Positions 6,744 to 57,111 of a stretch of 64,000 nt of DNA are shown in pieces. Below the pieces are notes generated by a model. The model had not been told where the DNA came from, did no database searches, and was given only the letters and a program-made list of their open reading frames with translations. The position numbers were made by a program, and so were the translations under genes. Within the stretch, counting starts at the first letter, position 1. Each line of letters starts with the position of its first letter. The stretch is taken from sequence record MT133560.1; one strand, 5' to 3'.

Positions 6744-7877
6744 ATGATTATGTTTAAGTACTTAAAAAATGTTATTGATATTTTTAACAAACCAAAAAAG
6801 GTAGATACATTAGAACAAAAGATAGCTAATCTAAATGATAAATACATCAGAGAAAATGTAGATGTTGATCAAATTGATATTCTGTCAGGTTATTTCACAG
6901 GAATGCTATCTGGGAAATTACATGATCGAAGTTTAGTATGGGGTTATTATACCAAAGAAACTAAGACATGGATGATTTATTTTGTTGAACAAAATTTTGA
7001 TTCATTCATGTATAAAGTAACTAATAATTCATTAGATATTATTAATCTAACTGATATAGAAGATCTTAAATTATTCTATTTCTCTAATGAACAATACATA
7101 CCTGTAAATACACCAATCAATAGTGATCTAAATGTGGCTGTAATTTTCACATCAAAACCACTCACTAAGGATTTCATTGATCCATCTTTAATAGATCAAG
7201 TTAAATCAGTTAATAGTAATTACAAGATTGTGATGGGTGGGTTATCTAATAATTCCAAATTTGATAGTAACCCAATAACTCTAATTGTAGAGTCTTATGA
7301 AGCAGATGGTGATATCGTCGTAGTTGAACTAACTAATGGTACAACTGTGGCCATCAATAGAAAACTACTTAATATGTTTATGTATCAGTCAAGAATAGTT
7401 GATACATGTAATAACTCAAAAGTGCTTATAGATTTCAATGGACGGCTAAAGTTCACACCTATGGAGAATCATTTAGGTGGTATAAATAGTGCAATGCATT
7501 ATTGGTCAAGTAATGGAATTATCAAAATTAGGTGTGACTATAGTATCATATTAGATCTAGATAAGTTTCCAGAGATTGCTAATCATATTGGAAACTGGAT
7601 ACATATTGAAGCTAAGACAATTGCAAAAGTAATTGACTCGGTTGTGGTACCATACTTAACAAATGGGGAGCTTAGTACGCTCATTGTTGATTTAGATAAT
7701 ATCGATATTCAGTATCGTGGTTTAACATTATCTGGTAATATCAGCTTGCGTGATCGTTTAGATAAATGCAAAATCAAACTGATAAATCCATCAACTGATC
7801 CATATGAGATACCTAGTCTAAATGGTAAACGTGATGTCCATGGTTTTTATAGAGTAGATGGAAGTTTATTAAAATGA
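6744..7877 (+). CDS. hypothetical protein
   Basis: 377-aa ORF, AAGGT upstream; no motif recognised. Confidence 0.85.
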   Translation: MIMFKYLKNVIDIFNKPKKVDTLEQKIANLNDKYIRENVDVDQIDILSGYFTGMLSGKLHDRSLVWGYYTKETKTWMIYFVEQNFDSFMYKVTNNSLDIINLTDIEDLKLFYFSNEQYIPVNTPINSDLNVAVIFTSKPLTKDFIDPSLIDQVKSVNSNYKIVMGGLSNNSKFDSNPITLIVESYEADGDIVVVELTNGTTVAINRKLLNMFMYQSRIVDTCNNSKVLIDFNGRLKFTPMENHLGGINSAMHYWSSNGIIKIRCDYSIILDLDKFPEIANHIGNWIHIEAKTIAKVIDSVVVPYLTNGELSTLIVDLDNIDIQYRGLTLSGNISLRDRLDKCKIKLINPSTDPYEIPSLNGKRDVHGFYRVDGSLLK

Positions 7878-47121: not shown

Positions 47122-47535
47122 ATGACTAGTCAACTTATCGTAGTTGATTTACAAAACCCTAGAAATAAACATATATACAGTGAATTAACTCATGAACATC
47201 CTAGAACAATAACATCACATCTAGTTGAAGAATTAGATGATTTTGATGTTCACCAATATTCATACCAAGCGGAGTATAAATCTGGGATTGATCTTAGATT
47301 AATATTCTTTTGGGATGGACCATACACTGAACCAAGAGAAGAAGGTTACGAACCAACTGATCTAGAGAAAAGGTGTGTGAAGTTGTGTAGGCAATATGAG
47401 GCTGCGATTAACGGGCAATTATCTGTAGTTGATCACTCTCGGTTCCGGACGGTGTGTACCTTCAGATCAGATAATAGTTTACCAACAACTTTAGACTGGA
47501 TTCATAAAGAACCCCCATCTAAAGAGGTTATGTAA
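47122..47535 (+). CDS. hypothetical protein
   Basis: ATG 47122, 1 nt after previous stop, preferred to ORF-track start 47011. Confidence 0.75.
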   Translation: MTSQLIVVDLQNPRNKHIYSELTHEHPRTITSHLVEELDDFDVHQYSYQAEYKSGIDLRLIFFWDGPYTEPREEGYEPTDLEKRCVKLCRQYEAAINGQLSVVDHSRFRTVCTFRSDNSLPTTLDWIHKEPPSKEVM

Positions 47536-47564
47536 AAAATAGTAAAAGAAATACACTATTCTAT

Positions 47565-47655
47565 GTAGTTCCTTTACGATTGCTCTTTTATCTTAGTTTC
47601 AGTTTTGCTGAAGAAGTACCAATGAGATACCCTCCCCTGATCGGGGAGGGTTTTT
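47565..47655 (+). ncRNA. candidate late small RNA (about 90 nt)
   Basis: TATGTAG at 47562-68, no ORF with RBS, terminator ACCCTCCCC-TGATC-GGGGAGGGT 47629-47651 + TTTTT. Confidence 0.5.
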
Positions 47656-47676
47656 GACATCTAAGAGGAAAATATA

Positions 47677-48057
47677 ATGTGCAAACAACATCGTGTAGTA
47701 TCTATGAAAGTTACATGCACGCAAGCTCGCTATCCGATCGGTCTGTGCGATCTCGGATTTGATAATGCTGCTGATGCTCGGCAATATCTATTAGATGTCG
47801 TTGAGTACAATATGGATCGTCTCCACCCGCAACATGCTAATACATTCCAGCTACAAAATCTACAAGACGGGTTCGTAGTATCCTACGATATCGAAAAAGA
47901 TGGATCCGTTTATCTTCGGTTAACACTGGCGGCTGTAGCTTATCAATCAATCGATCTTGAGTTGGGGGTTACCGTTAAAGAAAATGAAGGGATCAGTGTT
48001 GTAATCAAAAATTGGATCAATGGTGAGTATACTGCGGGGAACAAATACTTGCAGTAA
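47677..48057 (+). CDS. hypothetical protein
   Basis: GAGGA RBS; sits between two candidate sRNA units. Confidence 0.8.
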   Translation: MCKQHRVVSMKVTCTQARYPIGLCDLGFDNAADARQYLLDVVEYNMDRLHPQHANTFQLQNLQDGFVVSYDIEKDGSVYLRLTLAAVAYQSIDLELGVTVKENEGISVVIKNWINGEYTAGNKYLQ

Positions 48058-48065
48058 TACCATAT

Positions 48066-48188
48066 GTAAAGAATACCCAAATCGGGATCTCCCGGACTAT
48101 CTCCCTTCAGCGTTCCCGTCCGCAAATGAAGGTGCCGCCGAGATCCCACCTATTGATAATGCCCTCCCTTCGGGGAGGGCATTATTTC
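48066..48188 (+). ncRNA. candidate structured late small RNA (about 120 nt) with possible pseudoknot
   Basis: TATGTA at 48063-68; GGGATCTC/GAGATCCC stem (48084-91/48140-47) enclosing interleaved CGGAC/GTCCG and CCTTCA/TGAAGG; terminator 48158-48183. Confidence 0.6.
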
Positions 48189-48223
48189 GCTTAAGCCTAT
48201 TTATTTTATTATAAGGAGTGAAA

Positions 48224-48955
48224 ATGACATATATCGTAAATGATGGTAAAGTCATGATTGCAGACTGCCTATTAATTGAGCGGAATAATGCAACTGATAG
48301 CATTGGGCGACTTCCAGTATTAGATAACGGTTATATTGATCTAACTGCTAAAGCTGAAGGTGTAGATGTATATTACAATGATTGCCACAAGATAATTTTT
48401 CATCCGACAGTTACTTGGCAAGGTAAACGTGTTAAAACTATGGCTTTTGCTGGAACTATAGATAATGTTTATGATCTATTGAATGCCCTTACCGCAGGTG
48501 TTGATTTAGCTGATTGGTTTAAAGTTGAAGTAAATATCTTGCCAGTCATAGAACGCAGGTTGTTTAATGGTAATACTTCTATGATGTTCACTATGGAGAA
48601 TGGTGACATATATACAGTTATTCTTAAAGACATGGGTATCAACATCACCAAGAAAGATTGGGCTCATTTGGGTAGTGGTGTAGATGCAGTTAATAGTGTA
48701 CTTGAGTTTATCCCTAATTGTAATGATAATGGATCAACCAAACTAACTGCACTTGAAGCATTTGCTATTGCATGTGCACATACTACTACTGTAAGTCGTA
48801 AATTTGATTATTACATCCATGCTACAGGTGAGTACAAGCAAAATCAAGAACTATCAACTAAACAACTAAAATGGATACTAGCGCGCATTCAAAAGCGGAT
48901 GGATCTTACCCGCATTTTCAATGACCGCGAATATGCCAATAACATATGGGGTTGA
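48224..48955 (+). CDS. HslV/proteasome-beta-like Ntn hydrolase
   Basis: AGGAG RBS then Met-Thr start (MTYIVNDGKVMIAD), later K, AFAG, LGSG, LTALEAFAIA. Confidence 0.65.
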   Translation: MTYIVNDGKVMIADCLLIERNNATDSIGRLPVLDNGYIDLTAKAEGVDVYYNDCHKIIFHPTVTWQGKRVKTMAFAGTIDNVYDLLNALTAGVDLADWFKVEVNILPVIERRLFNGNTSMMFTMENGDIYTVILKDMGINITKKDWAHLGSGVDAVNSVLEFIPNCNDNGSTKLTALEAFAIACAHTTTVSRKFDYYIHATGEYKQNQELSTKQLKWILARIQKRMDLTRIFNDREYANNIWG

Positions 48956-50337: not shown

Positions 50338-50359
50338 CCCCTCTCCACATGGAGAGGGG
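50338..50359. terminator. bidirectional terminator at strand convergence
   Basis: CCCCTCTCC-ACAT-GGAGAGGGG between convergent genes. Confidence 0.85.
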
Positions 50360-50387
50360 CTATGTCTTTATTTTCTTTTATTTAAAC

Positions 50388-51616: not shown

Positions 51617-51693
51617 TGGTGCCGCCACTCCGAATCGAACGGAGGACCTACGCATTACAAGTGCGTTGCTCTACCTAGCTGAGCTATAGCGGC
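51617..51693 (-). tRNA. tRNA-Thr(TGT)
   Basis: 77-nt cloverleaf GCCGCTATAGCTCAG...CTTGTAA...TTCGATT...GGCGGCACCA, CCA encoded. Confidence 0.97.
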
Positions 51694-51701
51694 GGAATCT
51701 T

Positions 51702-51708
51702 CTACATA
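51702..51708 (-). promoter_or_regulatory. late-type promoter TATGTAG for tRNA-Thr
   Basis: G of TATG lies 12 nt before the tRNA 5' end. Confidence 0.7.
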
Positions 51709-51754
51709 TAGTGTATATGAAAGTATTATTTTATTATAATAAATAGAGTTATAT

Positions 51755-51790
51755 TCAAACTTATTTAAACAGTATATTATTAACTTGATA
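51755..51790 (+). promoter_or_regulatory. early-type promoter (class B variant)
   Basis: TATTCAAACTTATTTAAACAGTATATTATT resembles 21362-21390. Confidence 0.65.
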
Positions 51791-51836
51791 TTACTAAATG
51801 TAATATTTTCTATTAATTGTAAATAGGATACTAAAT

Positions 51837-51974
51837 ATGAATATTGATCCAAAAACTTTTGGTATTATTGTTAGCGCCACTATTGGCACCGTAGGTGCTC
51901 TTATTCTTACGTATGGTATCGTGAGAGCAGTGCGTGGAAATAATAAACCTGATGTAAAAGATGTAGCAGAGTAA
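51837..51974 (+). CDS. 45-aa membrane microprotein, lone plus-strand unit
   Basis: TAGGA RBS; MNIDPKTFGIIVSATIGTVGALILTYGIVRAVRGNNKPDVKDVAE; own promoter and terminator. Confidence 0.75.
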   Translation: MNIDPKTFGIIVSATIGTVGALILTYGIVRAVRGNNKPDVKDVAE

Positions 51975-51982
51975 GATAACAT

Positions 51983-52009
51983 AGAGCTAGCCCATTAGGG
52001 GCTAGCTCT
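51983..52009. terminator. bidirectional terminator
   Basis: AGAGCTAGCCC-ATTAG-GGGCTAGCTCT. Confidence 0.85.
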
Positions 52010-52032
52010 TATATTTATTTTTTTTATTTGTT

Positions 52033-52701
52033 TTAACTTGGGGTACTATAATAAATAAATTTAGTTAATTCGGCTTCTTGCTCTTTGATTATATTATTTT
52101 TTGTTTGCTTAACATTAATATAAGATTCAATAGATAGCCAACGCTGATCATATTCGGCTAAGTCATTGAATTCAATTTTCTCGAATCGCCATGACTGAAC
52201 AGTGGTTCTAATCAGATTACCTGATTTATTAACAATATAACCTTGCATTGTCTCAAAAAAGTCATCTGCTTTACTAATAACAATAATTAGATATACATCA
52301 TCTGTGTTTTTAGTATGCATTGATTTTAATTTATAGACACGTGGGTTAAAAGAATCAATATCTTTATAATGTTCTTTGATTTCTAGAACAGCATCAATCA
52401 TCATCTTGGCGCTATTTTGAATACCGTTATTAAGTAGATATTCATTAAGTTCTTTTAATGAGTCATCACTCAATGATGCTTCGATATGTTCTTCACTTAT
52501 AGGGTAGTGATAAACTAATTTATTAATAGCTGAATTAACAACATTTAGTTTATCAACATCATAAACTTCTAATGTTTGCTTGCCAACTTTTATTTTTAAT
52601 CCTTTATTTGAATCATTAATAAAGTTGTCTAGATCTACTTCAGTAAAATGAAAAGCCATTTTAATCACCTTTATGTTTTCCGTAGTGAAGTGAATAAACA
52701 C
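52033..52701 (-). CDS. hypothetical protein (start probably ATG 52659)
   Basis: AAGGTG RBS before MAFHF. Confidence 0.8.
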   Translation of the reverse strand: MFIHFTTENIKVIKMAFHFTEVDLDNFINDSNKGLKIKVGKQTLEVYDVDKLNVVNSAINKLVYHYPISEEHIEASLSDDSLKELNEYLLNNGIQNSAKMMIDAVLEIKEHYKDIDSFNPRVYKLKSMHTKNTDDVYLIIVISKADDFFETMQGYIVNKSGNLIRTTVQSWRFEKIEFNDLAEYDQRWLSIESYINVKQTKNNIIKEQEAELTKFIYYSTPS

Positions 52702-52797
52702 ACACCCGGTTTCTGGTTAGGATAAAGTATGGTTAATCCATACATAATAAAATACGCAAGAGTATTAAATTAAAAAAACTAATATAACCTGATAAAA

Positions 52798-52818
52798 ACC
52801 CTCCCATAATGGGAGGGT
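52798..52818 (-). terminator. intrinsic terminator
   Basis: ACCCTCCC-ATAAT-GGGAGGGT (plus-strand reading). Confidence 0.8.
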
Positions 52819-52823
52819 TATAA

Positions 52824-53382
52824 TTAGCTTTTAAGAACAGGTTTTAATATTAGATAAATATAGCAGTTAGCAGTAACTGTGGTTTCAACTACTTTACCAT
52901 CACTATCGATTGCTAAAAGATTAGATGGATTATTAGTGGATACAGTTGATGATAGTATTTTATACGAATCTGCTAATCGGATACTAATTAAAGGGCGTTG
53001 AGTACGTTTAACTCGACTACAGAAGAATGTTAAAAGGTATTCAGTACACTCTTCTATAGTAGGTATACTAACCTCCCAAGTAACATCCTGCATTTCGATA
53101 TTACGACCTTGTTGAACAGGGCCTCCTAAAGCAGTTATCATTGCACTTGGTAACTTATCAGTCATGTCACCGGAAGACGCCATTAAACCAGCTTGATATA
53201 TAGTTACAGCACTAACTAAATATATTGACGCTGTATCGAAAAGAGCTATGTATTTATCGCCAATCCCATATGTTACTGGCACCGCATCTAAATCGGCAAA
53301 CTTAATAGGTTTACCAGGAGTAGCCGCAATTAATGAATGGGTTGGTTTATTTTCTGGAACATATGTTTTAGTTAAATGACAT
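52824..53382 (-). CDS. probable virion-associated protein; 5' end appears frameshifted
   Basis: Frame open 38 codons upstream of GTG 53282; ATG 53382 joins it if one T is removed (MSLTKTYVPENK). Confidence 0.6.
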
Positions 53383-53464
53383 ACACAAAGCCATTTTTAT
53401 GACTTCGCGTATGCGTGGCACGTATCTATTAAGATGATACAACTTCATATCATAACAACATAAA

Positions 53465-53483
53465 GCCCTCCGTGATGGAGGGC
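53465..53483 (-). terminator. intrinsic terminator
   Basis: GCCCTCC-GTGAT-GGAGGGC with A/T tracts on both sides. Confidence 0.8.
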
Positions 53484-53503
53484 TTTTATTTTATTTTTAT
53501 ACT

Positions 53504-54028
53504 TTAACTAAAACGAACTACAATTACACTAGTACCAAAAGTATCAGCTACCCACTGATTAAATTCTTTATCAGTAATACCTCGTAAATTCAGATTATAA
53601 GATGCGTTATCTACAAGTATATAGCGGATATCTGAAAGTAAATTTTCATTAAAGTCTTTCTGGATCGTTGATAGTCCAGATTTATGGATATAGCTACGTA
53701 GTTTAAATGTAGTTAAATATGGAATAATGTTATCTGGTGTTTTGGATAGTTTATCTTGAGCACCACGTCGAATTCTTTCGTCGGTGAATACTGCCAAACA
53801 TTCACCAGGGTAGCGTTTTGAAAATTCCATTAATGCTGTAGTACTACCAGATTGACGACCAATAAAAAACCCTACTGTTCTATGATCACGTATAGTGATA
53901 TGACTGACATCATTAAGATGATAATGCATCCCATACTTATTCCAATTCTCATTAGTTTTATATATCAATGCATCCAGGATAGCCTGGTAATCAACAATAG
54001 TTTTTACAAACTGATTTGTGTTATTCAT
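53504..54028 (-). CDS. small P-loop-like protein
   Basis: GFFIGRQSGSTT (Walker-A-like, Lys absent) and YILVDNAS (Walker-B-like). Confidence 0.65.
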   Translation of the reverse strand: MNNTNQFVKTIVDYQAILDALIYKTNENWNKYGMHYHLNDVSHITIRDHRTVGFFIGRQSGSTTALMEFSKRYPGECLAVFTDERIRRGAQDKLSKTPDNIIPYLTTFKLRSYIHKSGLSTIQKDFNENLLSDIRYILVDNASYNLNLRGITDKEFNQWVADTFGTSVIVVRFS

Positions 54029-54174
54029 TATAGAAGTTCCTTTATTACAATGTAGTATATAACCTTTATTAAATTAGGTTATATACCGGCTATGGAAAAG
54101 GCCTCGTCACCTTCCCTTCACCTATATTAAATATCAATAGTGGTTATAAAGAACGAGATACACTCATTGACATA

Positions 54175-54285
54175 ATATAGCCAGGGGTGGCAAACCCCTG
54201 GCATTCAGACACACTCTATAATTAAATCTACCACCGAGTGTATTTAGTGGATAGCTTTAGGATTATCTAGATAAAGTAATCCTAC
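54175..54285 (-). ncRNA. candidate late small RNA (about 110 nt)
   Basis: TATGTAG 54288-82; 5' hairpin TAGGATTA/TAATCCTA; ACACTC/GAGTGT stem; 3' hairpin GCCAGGGG/CCCCTGGC 54202-54180; no ORF. Confidence 0.5.
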
Positions 54286-54319
54286 ATAATATCATCGCAC
54301 TAGTATTTTTATCTTTAGT

Positions 54320-55327
54320 TTAATCGAGAACTAATGGGGCTACTTTAACTTGATATATACCAGTTAATAATTGGCTTTTCAACATATATGCTCCACCACC
54401 AACCGCCATTTTAGATCCACCTACAATGATCATGCTATTATCCGGACCTTTAGCTATAGATGAAATATTAAGGAATCCGATACCTAGTTCAAATGGTTCA
54501 GCCCATTTCCGGCGCCTAATATTAAAACGTTGTGCAAACATTTTAGTTACACCGCCGACATCAACAGCGTTAAGGTAATTAAAATAGTCCCCATCTACAT
54601 AACCATTACCTTGCCAGATTGTTCCTTTATCAGCAGGTATAATCATCCAAGGTGTTTGCTCCCATATTAAGGTAGTTGCATTATATCGATAAACTTCAAG
54701 ATTAGGTATGTTCTTTGTATTATCCCAACCACCAAAATGGTAAAAGTAACCATTATAAAAGAATAACTGTTGACCTGAACGAGCACCACCTGAATAGTCT
54801 TGCCCGCTAAGCCAAGACTTACTTGATGGTTTTAATCGCATTGCGTTTACGCCAATTGGGTTAACGCATAGAATAAGATCATTACCATCTGATGCGGAGG
54901 CTGTGCCCCAAAGTGGTACGGGACCACTATATCGCTCAACCCTATTGCCTGTAGCTATATCAAAATGTTGTATAAAGTTAGATGTTCCCGTACCACCATT
55001 ACCAGCCGAGTTCCATCCAGTAATACCGCCATAAACAATAAAGTTATTCTTATGTAATGTCCCAAATCCTAAAGATACCCCTGGTAAGAATGTTCCAGAA
55101 GCAGTTGCACCTATATCGGCAAATGGCGATATGGTAAAACGTCTGAACACAGTTGCAGCTGTTTGTCCTTCAGTATGATGACCAGATCCAACATACAGTG
55201 TATTTCCATCCACATATGACATTGTACCAGCTAACGCTACAGGTAGATCACCTAATTTAATAATTTCATTAAATCCAACCAAGGGTAACTCTTCGCCTAT
55301 ATCTGGCGATAATAGTAATTCAAACAT
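54320..55327 (-). CDS. Kelch-repeat beta-propeller protein, probably virion/tail associated
   Basis: Repeated LYVGSG, FIVYGG, FYHFGGWD, IIVGG with downstream Y/W (VYRYN...WE). Confidence 0.8.
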   Translation of the reverse strand: MFELLLSPDIGEELPLVGFNEIIKLGDLPVALAGTMSYVDGNTLYVGSGHHTEGQTAATVFRRFTISPFADIGATASGTFLPGVSLGFGTLHKNNFIVYGGITGWNSAGNGGTGTSNFIQHFDIATGNRVERYSGPVPLWGTASASDGNDLILCVNPIGVNAMRLKPSSKSWLSGQDYSGGARSGQQLFFYNGYFYHFGGWDNTKNIPNLEVYRYNATTLIWEQTPWMIIPADKGTIWQGNGYVDGDYFNYLNAVDVGGVTKMFAQRFNIRRRKWAEPFELGIGFLNISSIAKGPDNSMIIVGGSKMAVGGGAYMLKSQLLTGIYQVKVAPLVLD

Positions 55328-55381
55328 GAGTGTGCTCTCAAGTAAATCATTTTAATTCATAAGATAACCCATGGCAACATA

Positions 55382-55405
55382 AAAGAGTAGCCGAAGCTAC
55401 TCTTT
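55382..55405 (-). terminator. intrinsic terminator after tRNA-Asn
   Basis: AAAGAGTAGC-TTCG-GCTACTCTTT (minus strand). Confidence 0.85.
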
Positions 55406-55411
55406 AGAATA

Positions 55412-55487
<76 letters not shown>

Positions 55488-55493
55488 ATTAAA

Positions 55494-55570
55494 TGGCGCG
55501 CCCAAGGGGACTCGAACCCCTGACCACCCGCGTGACAGGCGGGTATTCTAACCAACTGAACTATGAGCGC
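55494..55570 (-). tRNA. tRNA-Asp(GTC)
   Basis: 77-nt cloverleaf GCGCTCATAGTTCAG...CTGTCAC...GCCA. Confidence 0.97.
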
Positions 55571-55590
55571 AAACGTATGGACATGACTTC

Positions 55591-55597
55591 CTACATA
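55591..55597 (-). promoter_or_regulatory. late-type promoter TATGTAG for tRNA-Asp/Asn
   Basis: G of TATG lies 24 nt before the tRNA-Asp 5' end. Confidence 0.7.
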
Positions 55598-55622
55598 GTA
55601 TTACATAACCAGTAATATTTTA

Positions 55623-55970
55623 TTACGGGCGATCAGTCCAGTGCTTGAAATAGTTACCATCCTTGGGACGATCGTACTTAGCAAGAATATTTTTAAGTTC
55701 TTCGCCGGACAACTTAATACTATCGCCTACTGGGCTATCCAGTTCAGGGCAAGGTTCAGTTTTACGTGTAATGATTAAATTATCAGTCCCATCTTTGAAG
55801 ATAAAGATAAACTGCGTTTCATTAGCACTAATCTTTTTCTTAACGCAATGCTTTACTTCTGGATGTTTCTTGTGGATCGTTACAAAAGATTCAACAAGAG
55901 TTAGCTTTATAAACTCAGGGCTAATAAATGTGAAATATACAGCGCTCTGCGTTGGGGTTAGATGATCCAT
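55623..55970 (-). CDS. hypothetical protein
   Basis: GGAG RBS; co-oriented. Confidence 0.8.
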   Translation of the reverse strand: MDHLTPTQSAVYFTFISPEFIKLTLVESFVTIHKKHPEVKHCVKKKISANETQFIFIFKDGTDNLIITRKTEPCPELDSPVGDSIKLSGEELKNILAKYDRPKDGNYFKHWTDRP

Positions 55971-55972
55971 AT

Positions 55973-56278
55973 TTACTCCGTATGTTTGAGATAGGCTTTA
56001 ACTGCTTTAAGACCTTTATTAAAGAACATAGCTTCAACATAAGTAATGTTACTTACATCCTCGCCGATAAGTTCCCATTTGATGCAACGTGTAACAGCGT
56101 TGATTGTAATATCTAATCCGTTTGGGAATAGGGTTACTTCATCGGTCAGGTGAATCCAATCGGGAGCCTTCGCTCCATTACGTAAACGGGGACTAAAAGT
56201 AAGATTATAAAGTGTTTGTAATGGTTGTCTCAATAGTTCTTTTTGTTCTTGATGTTCCATGTATTTTCCTAGAGACAT
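55973..56278 (-). CDS. hypothetical protein (start may be 56260)
   Basis: Co-oriented ORF. Confidence 0.75.
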   Translation of the reverse strand: MSLGKYMEHQEQKELLRQPLQTLYNLTFSPRLRNGAKAPDWIHLTDEVTLFPNGLDITINAVTRCIKWELIGEDVSNITYVEAMFFNKGLKAVKAYLKHTE

Positions 56279-56526
56279 TTAAAAATATAAATAGAATGGT
56301 TATCTCTTTCGGTTATCTTTAGAGTATTCTCATTTCGAATAACTTCAAGAGACTTGTATTTATGTTCCAGAATATCCAGATGAGAAATACACTGTTCCCT
56401 ATTTTCAAATAGGATATTACTTTCATTAGTCGAAATGAAACCAAATAATCCAACTTTGATAGATAATACCAACATTATTACTGTATTCATGTTTTCCTCA
56501 ATGAGACAGTATAAAACCTCCCCCAA
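56269..56526 (-). CDS. small exported protein with F-x5-C...C pattern (start probably 56493)
   Basis: MNTVIMLVLSIKVGLFGF...LFENREQC...FKCL. Confidence 0.65.
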   Translation of the reverse strand: MGEVLYCLIEENMNTVIMLVLSIKVGLFGFISTNESNILFENREQCISHLDILEHKYKSLEVIRNENTLKITERDNHSIYIFKCL

Positions 56527-56534
56527 GTGGGAGG
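56517..56534 (-). terminator. hairpin after tRNA-CAT, probable terminator
   Basis: CCTCCC-CCAAGT-GGGAGG (plus-strand reading). Confidence 0.7.
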
Positions 56535-56542
56535 CTAGTATA

Positions 56543-56619
56543 TGGTGGGCCCAGCAGGACTTGAACCTGCGACCAAGCGATTATGAGTCGCCTGCTCTAA
56601 CCAACTGAGCTATAGGCCC
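56543..56619 (-). tRNA. tRNA with CAT anticodon, Ile2-type body (commonly annotated Met)
   Basis: GGGCCTATAGCTCAGTTGGTTAGAGCAGGCGACTCATAATCGCTTGGTCGCAGGTTCAAGTCCTGCTGGGCCCACCA; closely resembles E. coli ileX. Confidence 0.95.
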
Positions 56620-56626
56620 TTTTTAT

Positions 56627-56920
56627 TTATTCTGGTAAGAATGTTCCATCTTTTTGACGGACTAATACACCTGACCATTTGAATGTATTTGTATCACTAG
56701 CAGGGCACTCTCTAATTACATTGGTTCTAAATGTGCCATGTGGATAGGTTACAGTGAATGTAATATGGTTATTACAAACATGTAATACAGAAGACTTTGC
56801 TTCTGTTAGATAGTGTAAGCCTTGAGCTAATTGAATATTAGTTAATTCAGGGTCACTAAGAATAGCGTAAAGAGCTGTTCCTATAATTTGATGTTCCCAT
56901 GATATCCATTTATTATCCAT
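56627..56920 (-). CDS. hypothetical protein between tRNAs
   Basis: TAGGA RBS. Confidence 0.75.
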   Translation of the reverse strand: MDNKWISWEHQIIGTALYAILSDPELTNIQLAQGLHYLTEAKSSVLHVCNNHITFTVTYPHGTFRTNVIRECPASDTNTFKWSGVLVRQKDGTFLPE

Positions 56921-56941
56921 CCTATTTACCTATTATTAAAA

Positions 56942-57017
56942 TGGTCGGAGTGGGGAGACTCGAACTCCCGACATCCTGCTCCCAAAGCAGGCGCGCTACC
57001 AACTGCGCTACACTCCG
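56942..57017 (-). tRNA. tRNA-Pro(TGG)
   Basis: 76-nt cloverleaf CGGAGTGTAGCGCAG...CTTTGGG...ACCA. Confidence 0.97.
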
Positions 57018-57026
57018 TATTTAAAT

Positions 57027-57111
57027 TGGTGCCCGAAGTCGGATTCGAACCGACAAGACCGTAGCCGGAAGATTTTAAGTCTTCTGTGTTTACCAATTTC
57101 ACCATTCGGGC
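57027..57111 (-). tRNA. tRNA-Leu(TAA)
   Basis: 85-nt with long variable arm, GCCCGAATGGTG...ACTTAAA...ACCA. Confidence 0.97.

Follow-up and report, generated by a model that had tools for sequence, protein, structure and literature searches.

A conserved rod-like non-coding RNA with its own promoter and terminator in phiKZ-like Pseudomonas jumbo phages

A stretch of 64,000 nucleotides of record MT133560.1 (hereafter the window) was analysed. It is from a phiKZ-type Pseudomonas jumbo phage: the region of the locus described here matches Pseudomonas phage KTN4 at 100% identity and phiKZ at 99.4%, and adding 215105 converts window coordinates to those of phiKZ. Between PHIKZ288 (47677–48057) and PHIKZ289 (48224–48955) lies an element that, like both genes, is on the + strand. 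It consists of a promoter (phiKZ P130, 48043–48067), a single-stranded 5' leader (48067–48083), a rod-like conserved core (48084–48147), a linker (48148–48154) and an intrinsic terminator (phiKZ T119, 48156–48187). GC content, 35% across the window, rises to 63% here (60-nt window), in keeping with the GC-rich core in AT-rich DNA that had been predicted from the sequence, and no other GC island in the 64 kb lies outside both tRNA genes and coding sequence.

PHIKZ289, annotated everywhere as hypothetical, is the first gene reached when T119 is read through. Its match in PHROG is weak (phrog_1040, 'peptidase HslV family', E = 5e-5). M1-T2, D14, K56 and G152 are invariant, and a GSG motif (residues 150–152) is largely kept. 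The AlphaFold model has a pLDDT of 74, with low confidence in an insert at residues 17–54; Foldseek matched it to 20S proteasome beta subunits (E ∼1e-6, probability 1.0) at TM-scores of only 0.40–0.48. PHIKZ289 looks like an Ntn hydrolase of the proteasome-beta/HslV type, with an N-terminal threonine, and this study flags the gene behind the RNA as a proteasome-like peptidase. A homologue in PhiPA3, gp355 (hhalign 97%, E = 1e-10), has diverged: it starts with MS rather than MT and has no GSG, and it seems to have lost the threonine and the GSG motif. A literature search on phiKZ gp288 or gp289 found nothing.

Transcription of the locus has been mapped by ONT-cappable-seq of phiKZ (Putzeys et al., Microlife 2024, PMC10914365; bioRxiv 10.1101/2023.10.13.562163), the source of all start-site, termination-site and transcription-unit data used here. 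The promoter motif of the phiKZ nvRNAP is TATG, with initiation at or next to its 3' G. This motif is present at 48063–66, as part of the TATGTA correctly placed at 48063–68 by the original prediction, and a AAATACTT-type box lies upstream at 48043–50. The start site mapped for P130, which was classed as a 'middle promoter', is phiKZ 263172(+), or window 48067 (Putzeys et al. supplement, PMC10914365). We conclude that the element is transcribed from its own phage promoter. At its other end, a terminator scan found a GC-rich hairpin with a 13-bp stem (48156–68/48173–85), a UUCG loop and a U-tract, and the published termination site T119 ('intrinsic', −18.6 kcal/mol) places the RNA 3' end at phiKZ 263292, window 48187 (Putzeys et al., PMC10914365). 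A UUCG terminator had been foreseen at 48158–83; the terminator is present, but its hairpin extends over 48156–48185, with the U-tract behind it.

P130 and T119 delimit TU198, a 120-nt unit on the + strand without an annotated gene and one of 17 phiKZ ncRNA candidates, each given with an RNAfold energy only (Putzeys et al., PMC10914365). Table S7 of the preprint enters it as '5'UTR-derived, PHIKZ289, 120 nt, -46.6 kcal/mol' and leaves the validation column empty (bioRxiv 10.1101/2023.10.13.562163). TU198 and the element are the same locus and the same molecule, matching in start site, termination site, length and strand. The RNA had therefore already been catalogued when it was predicted from the sequence, and the discrete species of about 120 nt expected between the TATG promoter and the terminator exists, with both ends mapped (PMC10914365), so that the prediction does not founder for want of a discrete transcript. 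The paper on TU198 has no northern blot, consensus structure, homologues beyond the genus, covariation, long form or proposed function for it (PMC10914365), and a jumbo-phage review says on this topic only that phiKZ expresses ncRNAs.

Transcripts from P128 and P129 likewise terminate at T119 (Putzeys et al., PMC10914365). The same is true of TU195 and TU197, the PHIKZ288 transcripts (Putzeys et al. transcription-unit table, PMC10914365), and the core therefore also lies within the 3' UTR of PHIKZ288 transcripts. The longest read from P130 reached phiKZ 264292, covering PHIKZ289, while for most such units the short species predominates (Putzeys et al., PMC10914365). Most transcripts end at T119 as the RNA of about 120 nt, and some continue into the downstream operon. 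PHIKZ289 itself lacks a promoter: P131, the next to have been mapped, is at the end of the gene (Putzeys et al., PMC10914365). A second published '5'UTR-derived ncRNA candidate' (P129 to T118, 89 nt) occupies window 47566–47655, just upstream of PHIKZ288; it ends at a terminator at about 47630–47656 and bears no resemblance to the element studied here.

The sequence from 48063 to 48195 has a minimum free energy of −50.6 kcal/mol, as compared with −32.5 ± 3.7 kcal/mol for shuffled sequences (z = −4.9), none of 200 shuffles being as good. The fold is nested, with an outer stem, a 3-bp CGG/CCG helix, CCUUCA/UGAAGG, a 3-bp GCG/CGC helix carrying an 8-nt loop, and a terminator hairpin of 13–14 bp; RNAalifold independently recovered the same helices and terminator. 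In the core, which minimum free energy, RNAalifold and covariation all support, these helices are P1a (48084–91/48140–47), P1b (48093–95/48135–37), P2 (48104–09/48127–32) and P3 (48110–12/48121–23). P1b and P2 flank an internal loop of 8/2 nt, in which 48096–48103 (ACUAUCUC) is opposite UG at 48133–34, and P3 is capped by an apical loop of 8 nt at 48113–20 (UUCCCGUC). The 5' leader is single-stranded in alignment A2 (see below) and in the minimum-free-energy folds; the phiKZ lineage has 7 nt more here than its relatives, which read (G)UA-ACGAAY. The element folds as an unbranched nested rod interrupted by a single large, asymmetric internal loop. The invariant AUCUCCC motif of that loop recurs in the 5' strand of P1a (GGGAUCUCCCGG, window 48084–48095), but only in the phiKZ lineage.

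Every string quoted in the original prediction occurs in the sequence. Its outer stem, GGGATCTC at 48084–91 with GAGATCCC at 48140–47, is P1a of the supported fold, and its CCTTCA/TGAAGG helix (48104–09/48127–32) is P2. The third helix, CGGAC with GTCCG, was correctly placed at 48093–97 for its 5' strand, but its partner lies at 48118–22 rather than 48117–21. The anatomy read from the sequence is two-thirds right, and the pseudoknot and ribozyme reading built on it is wrong, as discussed below.

Homologues were found in at least 12 sequence types: phiKZ, T2P, RVTF4, Psa21, D6, Phabio, PA1C, PhiPA3 and four IMG/VR contigs. In Phikzvirus the core (77 nt) occurs once per genome and hardly varies, and a covariance-model search found no second copy in the 64-kb window. 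The T2P group has a core that is 97% identical, as compared with 58–79% in the flanks; by part, identity is 95–98% in promoter and core, 58% in the terminator and 79% in the coding DNA of PHIKZ289. Both substitutions in the T2P core are at unpaired positions. Close by, a block of about 650 nt (window 47122–47780) is 98–100% identical to T2P within flanks that are 70–80% identical. This indicates a recent mosaic exchange between phiKZ-type and T2P-type phages adjoining the locus, and mosaicism therefore contributes to such identity patterns in these genomes.

At greater distances the element was found upstream of PHIKZ289 homologues in RVTF4 (74% amino acid identity) and in Psa21 and D6 (39%). 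Exact-block scans yielded the four IMG/VR sequence types and a fifth truncated on the 5' side, on contigs of 50 to 317 kb; in IMG/VR, JGI metagenomes and GTDB genomes, the exact-block patterns returned only the same phage lineages and chance matches. A covariance model (R1) run unfiltered on the region downstream of PHIKZ287 homologues scored the distant members at 53 bits (Phabio), 48.5 bits (PA1C) and 31 bits (PhiPA3). The syntenic region of 201phi2-1 had no match to the model. In Viktualia, which has a PHIKZ289-like gene without upstream intergenic space, the model gave a weak E = 0.06 inside coding sequence. Every member has a AAATACTT-like box and a TAT(A)TG/AG promoter motif, both conserved in all relatives, followed by core, linker and terminator. 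The stem sequence of the terminator differs between phages, and its pairing is kept by compensatory changes (RNAalifold alignment). We conclude that the element is the phiKZ short-form copy of a conserved ncRNA of the Pseudomonas phiKZ-like, nucleus-forming jumbo phages.

Compensatory changes in relatives, which the original prediction had named as a check, were found, and they support the rod. In a MAFFT alignment of nine short-form sequence types (A2), 92.8% of cells were paired under the nested model, as compared with 36–45% in slid controls. Twelve of the 22 pairs had compensatory changes, and the observed covariation score was reached by none of 500 shuffles. With 12 types in a model-fitted alignment, compensatory changes rose to 16 of 22 pairs with 92.6% of cells paired, figures that lean towards the nested model because the alignment was fitted to it. 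P2 reads CCUUCA/UGAAGG in phiKZ, CCAGCU/AGCUGG in RVTF4, CCAAC/GUUGG in Psa21 and CCAGC/GCUGG in D6; its pairing is kept by compensatory changes. P1b occurs across the family as CGG/CCG, CGUGG/CCACG and CGUAG/CUACG. Two of the three core pairs of P1b and all three pairs of P3 are compensatory, and G–U pairs occur on the + strand only. A scan for further pairings shared by all sequences returned nothing but overlaps with the nested helices, such as GGUG/CACC, whose invariance leaves no covariation to count. We conclude that the element is real and that selection acts on its structure.

The unpaired nucleotides are conserved as well. Across the nine short-form types the internal loop reads A-A/C-C/U-AUCUC and faces UG, the apical loop reads U-A/U-CCCGUC, and ACCUAUU follows P1. 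All members share AUCUC, the CCCGUC core and UG without change; the distant ones show slight variation in the linker and in the loop positions that flank these motifs. The linker, which joins core to terminator, is ACCUAUU in all nine short-form types (A2). Phabio, PA1C, PhiPA3 and KEN49 have slight variants of it, among them ACCUUAUU, ACUUAU and GCCUAUU; in KEN49 the difference is a C-to-U change in an otherwise invariant linker.

In some phages the core and terminator are far apart. PA1C-type phages (seven GenBank records, 91–100% identical) and PhiPA3 carry about 230 nt of GC-rich, strongly folding RNA between them (z = −4.7 in PA1C), and the phiKZ-type phage vB_Pae3705-KEN49 (KEN49) has an insertion of 280 nt at the same point that is unique by BLAST. 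Core-to-terminator spacing in these three is 230–280 nt. The KEN49 insertion aligns with the PA1C and PhiPA3 extension through the blocks GCUUWCGGUGU, UCCGYAU, CAARCYG and AGUUAMGA. The family thus comes in two sizes, a long form of about 400 nt and a short form to which the phiKZ element belongs. The extension has no Rfam match and no conserved ORF, the conserved blocks falling in different frames in different phages. RNAalifold on four extension sequences, too few and too uncertainly aligned to define a structure, predicted several hairpins and some compensatory pairs. The long-form segment may belong to a larger structured RNA of which the phiKZ element is the 5' domain. In the extracted loci, the extension is at 1600–1880 (KEN49), 7450–7700 (PA1C) and 7320–7580 (PhiPA3). 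What appears to be new is the conserved fold, its occurrence in several jumbo-phage genera and the long form; the transcript itself had already been catalogued.

The genes on the two sides of the RNA differ in constancy. Upstream, PHIKZ287 and its neighbour are syntenic in all lineages and the genes between them and the RNA vary, with no PHIKZ288 homologue detectable beside the RNA in relatives. Downstream, the unit of promoter, core and terminator lies directly 5' of a small-TM gene and/or a PHIKZ289 homologue in every lineage, down to 25–39% protein identity. In most short-form relatives a small ORF with two TMs stands between the RNA and the peptidase gene; it is absent in phiKZ and T2P. 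One IMG/VR contig, of 310 kb, has no PHIKZ289 homologue. The small two-TM proteins have in common an E-x-RYGL-x-F motif, and their stop codon overlaps the peptidase start (ATGA); in five extracted loci the ORFs span 1271–1504, 1334–1504, 1286–1504, 2015–2203(−) and about 95–271 (listed ORF 17–271).

Known RNA classes were searched for the element. At the gathering score, Rfam gave no family match for it in the whole window, so the Rfam search suggested in the original prediction leaves the structured RNA outside all Rfam families; at E ≤ 10, the locus and three relatives had only terminator-like or chance matches, and cmscan on phiKZ, Psa21 and PA1C returned no ribozyme or riboswitch family. 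ARAGORN found no tRNA or tmRNA at the element. The tRNA cluster of phiKZ, six genes of 63–73 bits on the minus strand, is at window 51620–57111, 3.5–9 kb downstream. A frameshift signal was considered for CCCAAAU, 1 nt before P1a, and rejected on inspection: it lies past the PHIKZ288 stop, the frame is unconserved and the −1 frame stops at 48127. That the RNA might be of a novel structured class is borne out insofar as it is conserved, covarying and outside Rfam, but the class is not one of pseudoknots or ribozymes.

Transcription can reach PHIKZ289 only through T119, and a cis-acting leader that tunes read-through is therefore the most economical reading of the locus. We tentatively favour, with a confidence somewhat short of even, a factor-binding cis leader that tunes T119 read-through into the peptidase operon, the bound factor possibly being the polymerase itself. 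The conserved unpaired nucleotides would be the docking surface for a trans factor, either a small ligand or a protein; the RNA polymerase that the phage encodes might be that protein. The leader would then act in cis to set transcription past the terminator, through attenuation or put-like antitermination, a mode of action that would differ from the alternative-hairpin switching of classical riboswitches. As expected of an attenuator, a conserved and covarying structured domain is found upstream of the small-TM gene and/or the PHIKZ289 homologue.

The layout is that of attenuation leaders and terminator-platform riboswitches, with a promoter-proximal structured domain, a terminator and then genes, and like them the element yields short terminated and long read-through transcripts. 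It differs from them in having no competing antiterminator or anti-antiterminator pairing, no known aptamer match, and a gap between core and terminator of up to 230–280 nt; nor do its downstream genes imply a ligand. Mutually exclusive terminator and antiterminator pairing was sought in nine truncated leaders and not found: when folded up to the terminator loop, all nine kept the core intact and left the 5' arm of the terminator free, and in the long form the two parts are 230–280 nt apart. With that gap in PA1C, PhiPA3 and KEN49, any coupling must act at a distance.

HK022 putL and putR are processive-antitermination RNAs of two stem-loops. Like the element, they are structured phage RNAs of about 65–70 nt just past the promoter and ahead of a terminator, and a put-like action in cis on the polymerase at a distance would tolerate the long-form insertion. 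They have no sequence or structure similarity to the element, which is a single rod, and by this analogy the polymerase would be the phiKZ nvRNAP. Several observations weigh against a cis leader. The terminator sequence varies independently of the core, and a complete unit of promoter, structured domain and terminator is also typical of a stand-alone sRNA gene. No downstream gene is universal, the peptidase or the small-TM gene being missing in some phages, which argues against autoregulation by a downstream product.

A bolder form of the cis-leader reading is that the RNA represents a new class of cis regulator for transcription in nucleus-forming jumbo phages, either a put-like antiterminator acting on the nvRNAP or a new riboswitch or protein-sensing aptamer. 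We regard this as unlikely. If it were true, the form of about 400 nt in PA1C, PhiPA3 and KEN49 would be a large structured RNA not described before, and phiKZ would retain no more than its 5' domain. The phiKZ-like phages transcribe by their own non-canonical RNA polymerases inside a protein 'nucleus', and we know of almost no account of regulation at the operon level inside it. Promoter-proximal terminated RNAs of phiKZ have been catalogued and, to our knowledge, none had previously been shown to be under structural selection.

The principal alternative, possible but less probable than the cis leader, is a stand-alone trans-acting sRNA, in which the terminated 120-nt product is functional and read-through into PHIKZ289 is incidental. 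Its C/U-rich unpaired stretches AUCUCCC, ACCCGUC and CCACCUAUU would pair with purine-rich sites (Shine–Dalgarno sequences in host or phage mRNAs) or would bind or sponge a protein. The conservation of promoter, structured domain, single-stranded linker and terminator hairpin in all short-form lineages is consistent with such an RNA, as are the presence of three conserved pyrimidine-rich single-stranded motifs, the predominance of the short species reported for most units of this kind (Putzeys et al., PMC10914365), the inconstant downstream gene content and the failure to find an antiterminator in nine leaders. The sRNAs of the RsaE/RoxS type provide a parallel in combining several conserved C/U-rich unpaired motifs with a terminator hairpin; their sequences are unrelated, and the element differs in that one motif is partly paired, half of AUCUCCC being in P2, and in having a long form. 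In RsaE/RoxS-type sRNAs, C-rich unpaired motifs target Shine–Dalgarno regions. Against an sRNA, the 230–280 nt of extra structured RNA before the terminator in the long-form phages means that a simple sRNA architecture is not universal. The same downstream operon also stays adjacent though the upstream neighbours vary, and PHIKZ289 depends on read-through of T119. With its covarying fold, conserved loops, multi-genus spread and short and long forms, the RNA is a concrete candidate, amenable to experiment, either for a phage sRNA or for control of terminator read-through by an RNA.

A role in RNA processing or stability is unlikely. The irregular hairpin of about 22 bp would serve as a site of the RNase III or RNase E type, or as a protective end structure, and would shape the 3' end of PHIKZ288 mRNA or the 5' end of PHIKZ289 mRNA, as the early RNase III sites of T7 do. 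A long irregular hairpin with conserved internal-loop nucleotides fits such a role, as does its position in both the 3' UTR of TU195 and TU197 and the 5' UTR of the PHIKZ289 transcript. It is at odds with a conserved promoter of the RNA's own immediately upstream in all lineages and with the lack of conservation of PHIKZ288 beside the RNA, and the published ends are those of the start site and the terminator, with none inside the hairpin.

The original prediction had placed an H-type pseudoknot inside the 8-bp stem, with likenesses to HDV-like ribozymes; that the RNA is such a pseudoknot, whether as a self-cleaving ribozyme or as a pseudoknotted aptamer, is scarcely credible. In phiKZ, CGGAC (48093–97) can indeed pair with GUCCG (48118–22), interleaved with CCUUCA/UGAAGG. 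This helix (S1, 48093–48122) is specific to the phiKZ lineage and has no compensatory change, only 66.7% of cells being paired in relatives. It is mutually exclusive with the covarying P1b and P3, and the minimum-free-energy fold is nested. With S1 lacking covariation and excluded by P1b and P3, the supported fold is the rod and not an H-type pseudoknot, and the scan for universally kept pairings gave nothing outside the nested helices. Models of the HDV type in Rfam are nested double pseudoknots of P1, P1.1, P2, P3 and P4. The element shares with HDV-like ribozymes a GC-rich, compact make-up and, in phiKZ, one possible interleaved pairing. It differs in its unbranched nested fold, a simple rod whose interleaved helix is unconserved, and in matching no Rfam ribozyme or riboswitch family at E ≤ 10; P1 and P4 are absent, as the prediction itself had stated.

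Equally hard to credit is a signal at the level of DNA (an inverted repeat bound by protein, or a cruciform) or a small protein gene (a 64-codon ORF at 48020–48214). Inverted repeats are present, and a hypothetical protein is annotated over the element in several GenBank records. Against this, only the + strand tolerates G–U pairs, and the RNA has been mapped with precisely these ends. Stop codons interrupt all six frames across the element in RVTF4 and two of the IMG/VR types, and no frame is open across the family, in which variable segments differ by 1–6 nt and indels are not multiples of three.

The UUUAUGCCG that follows the terminator hairpin was considered as a part of the RNA and rejected, as it is also present at unrelated terminators (phiKZ T120, 201phi2-1, Noxifer and Phabio). 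Directly after the hairpin, UUUAUGCCG(U) is common to the terminators of phiKZ T120 (at about window 50338–50370), Psa21, 201phi2-1, Noxifer and Phabio; one example is at 1293–1322 of the extracted locus whose two-TM ORF spans 1334–1504. This recurrence in sequence suggests a terminator consensus particular to these phages or to their polymerases.
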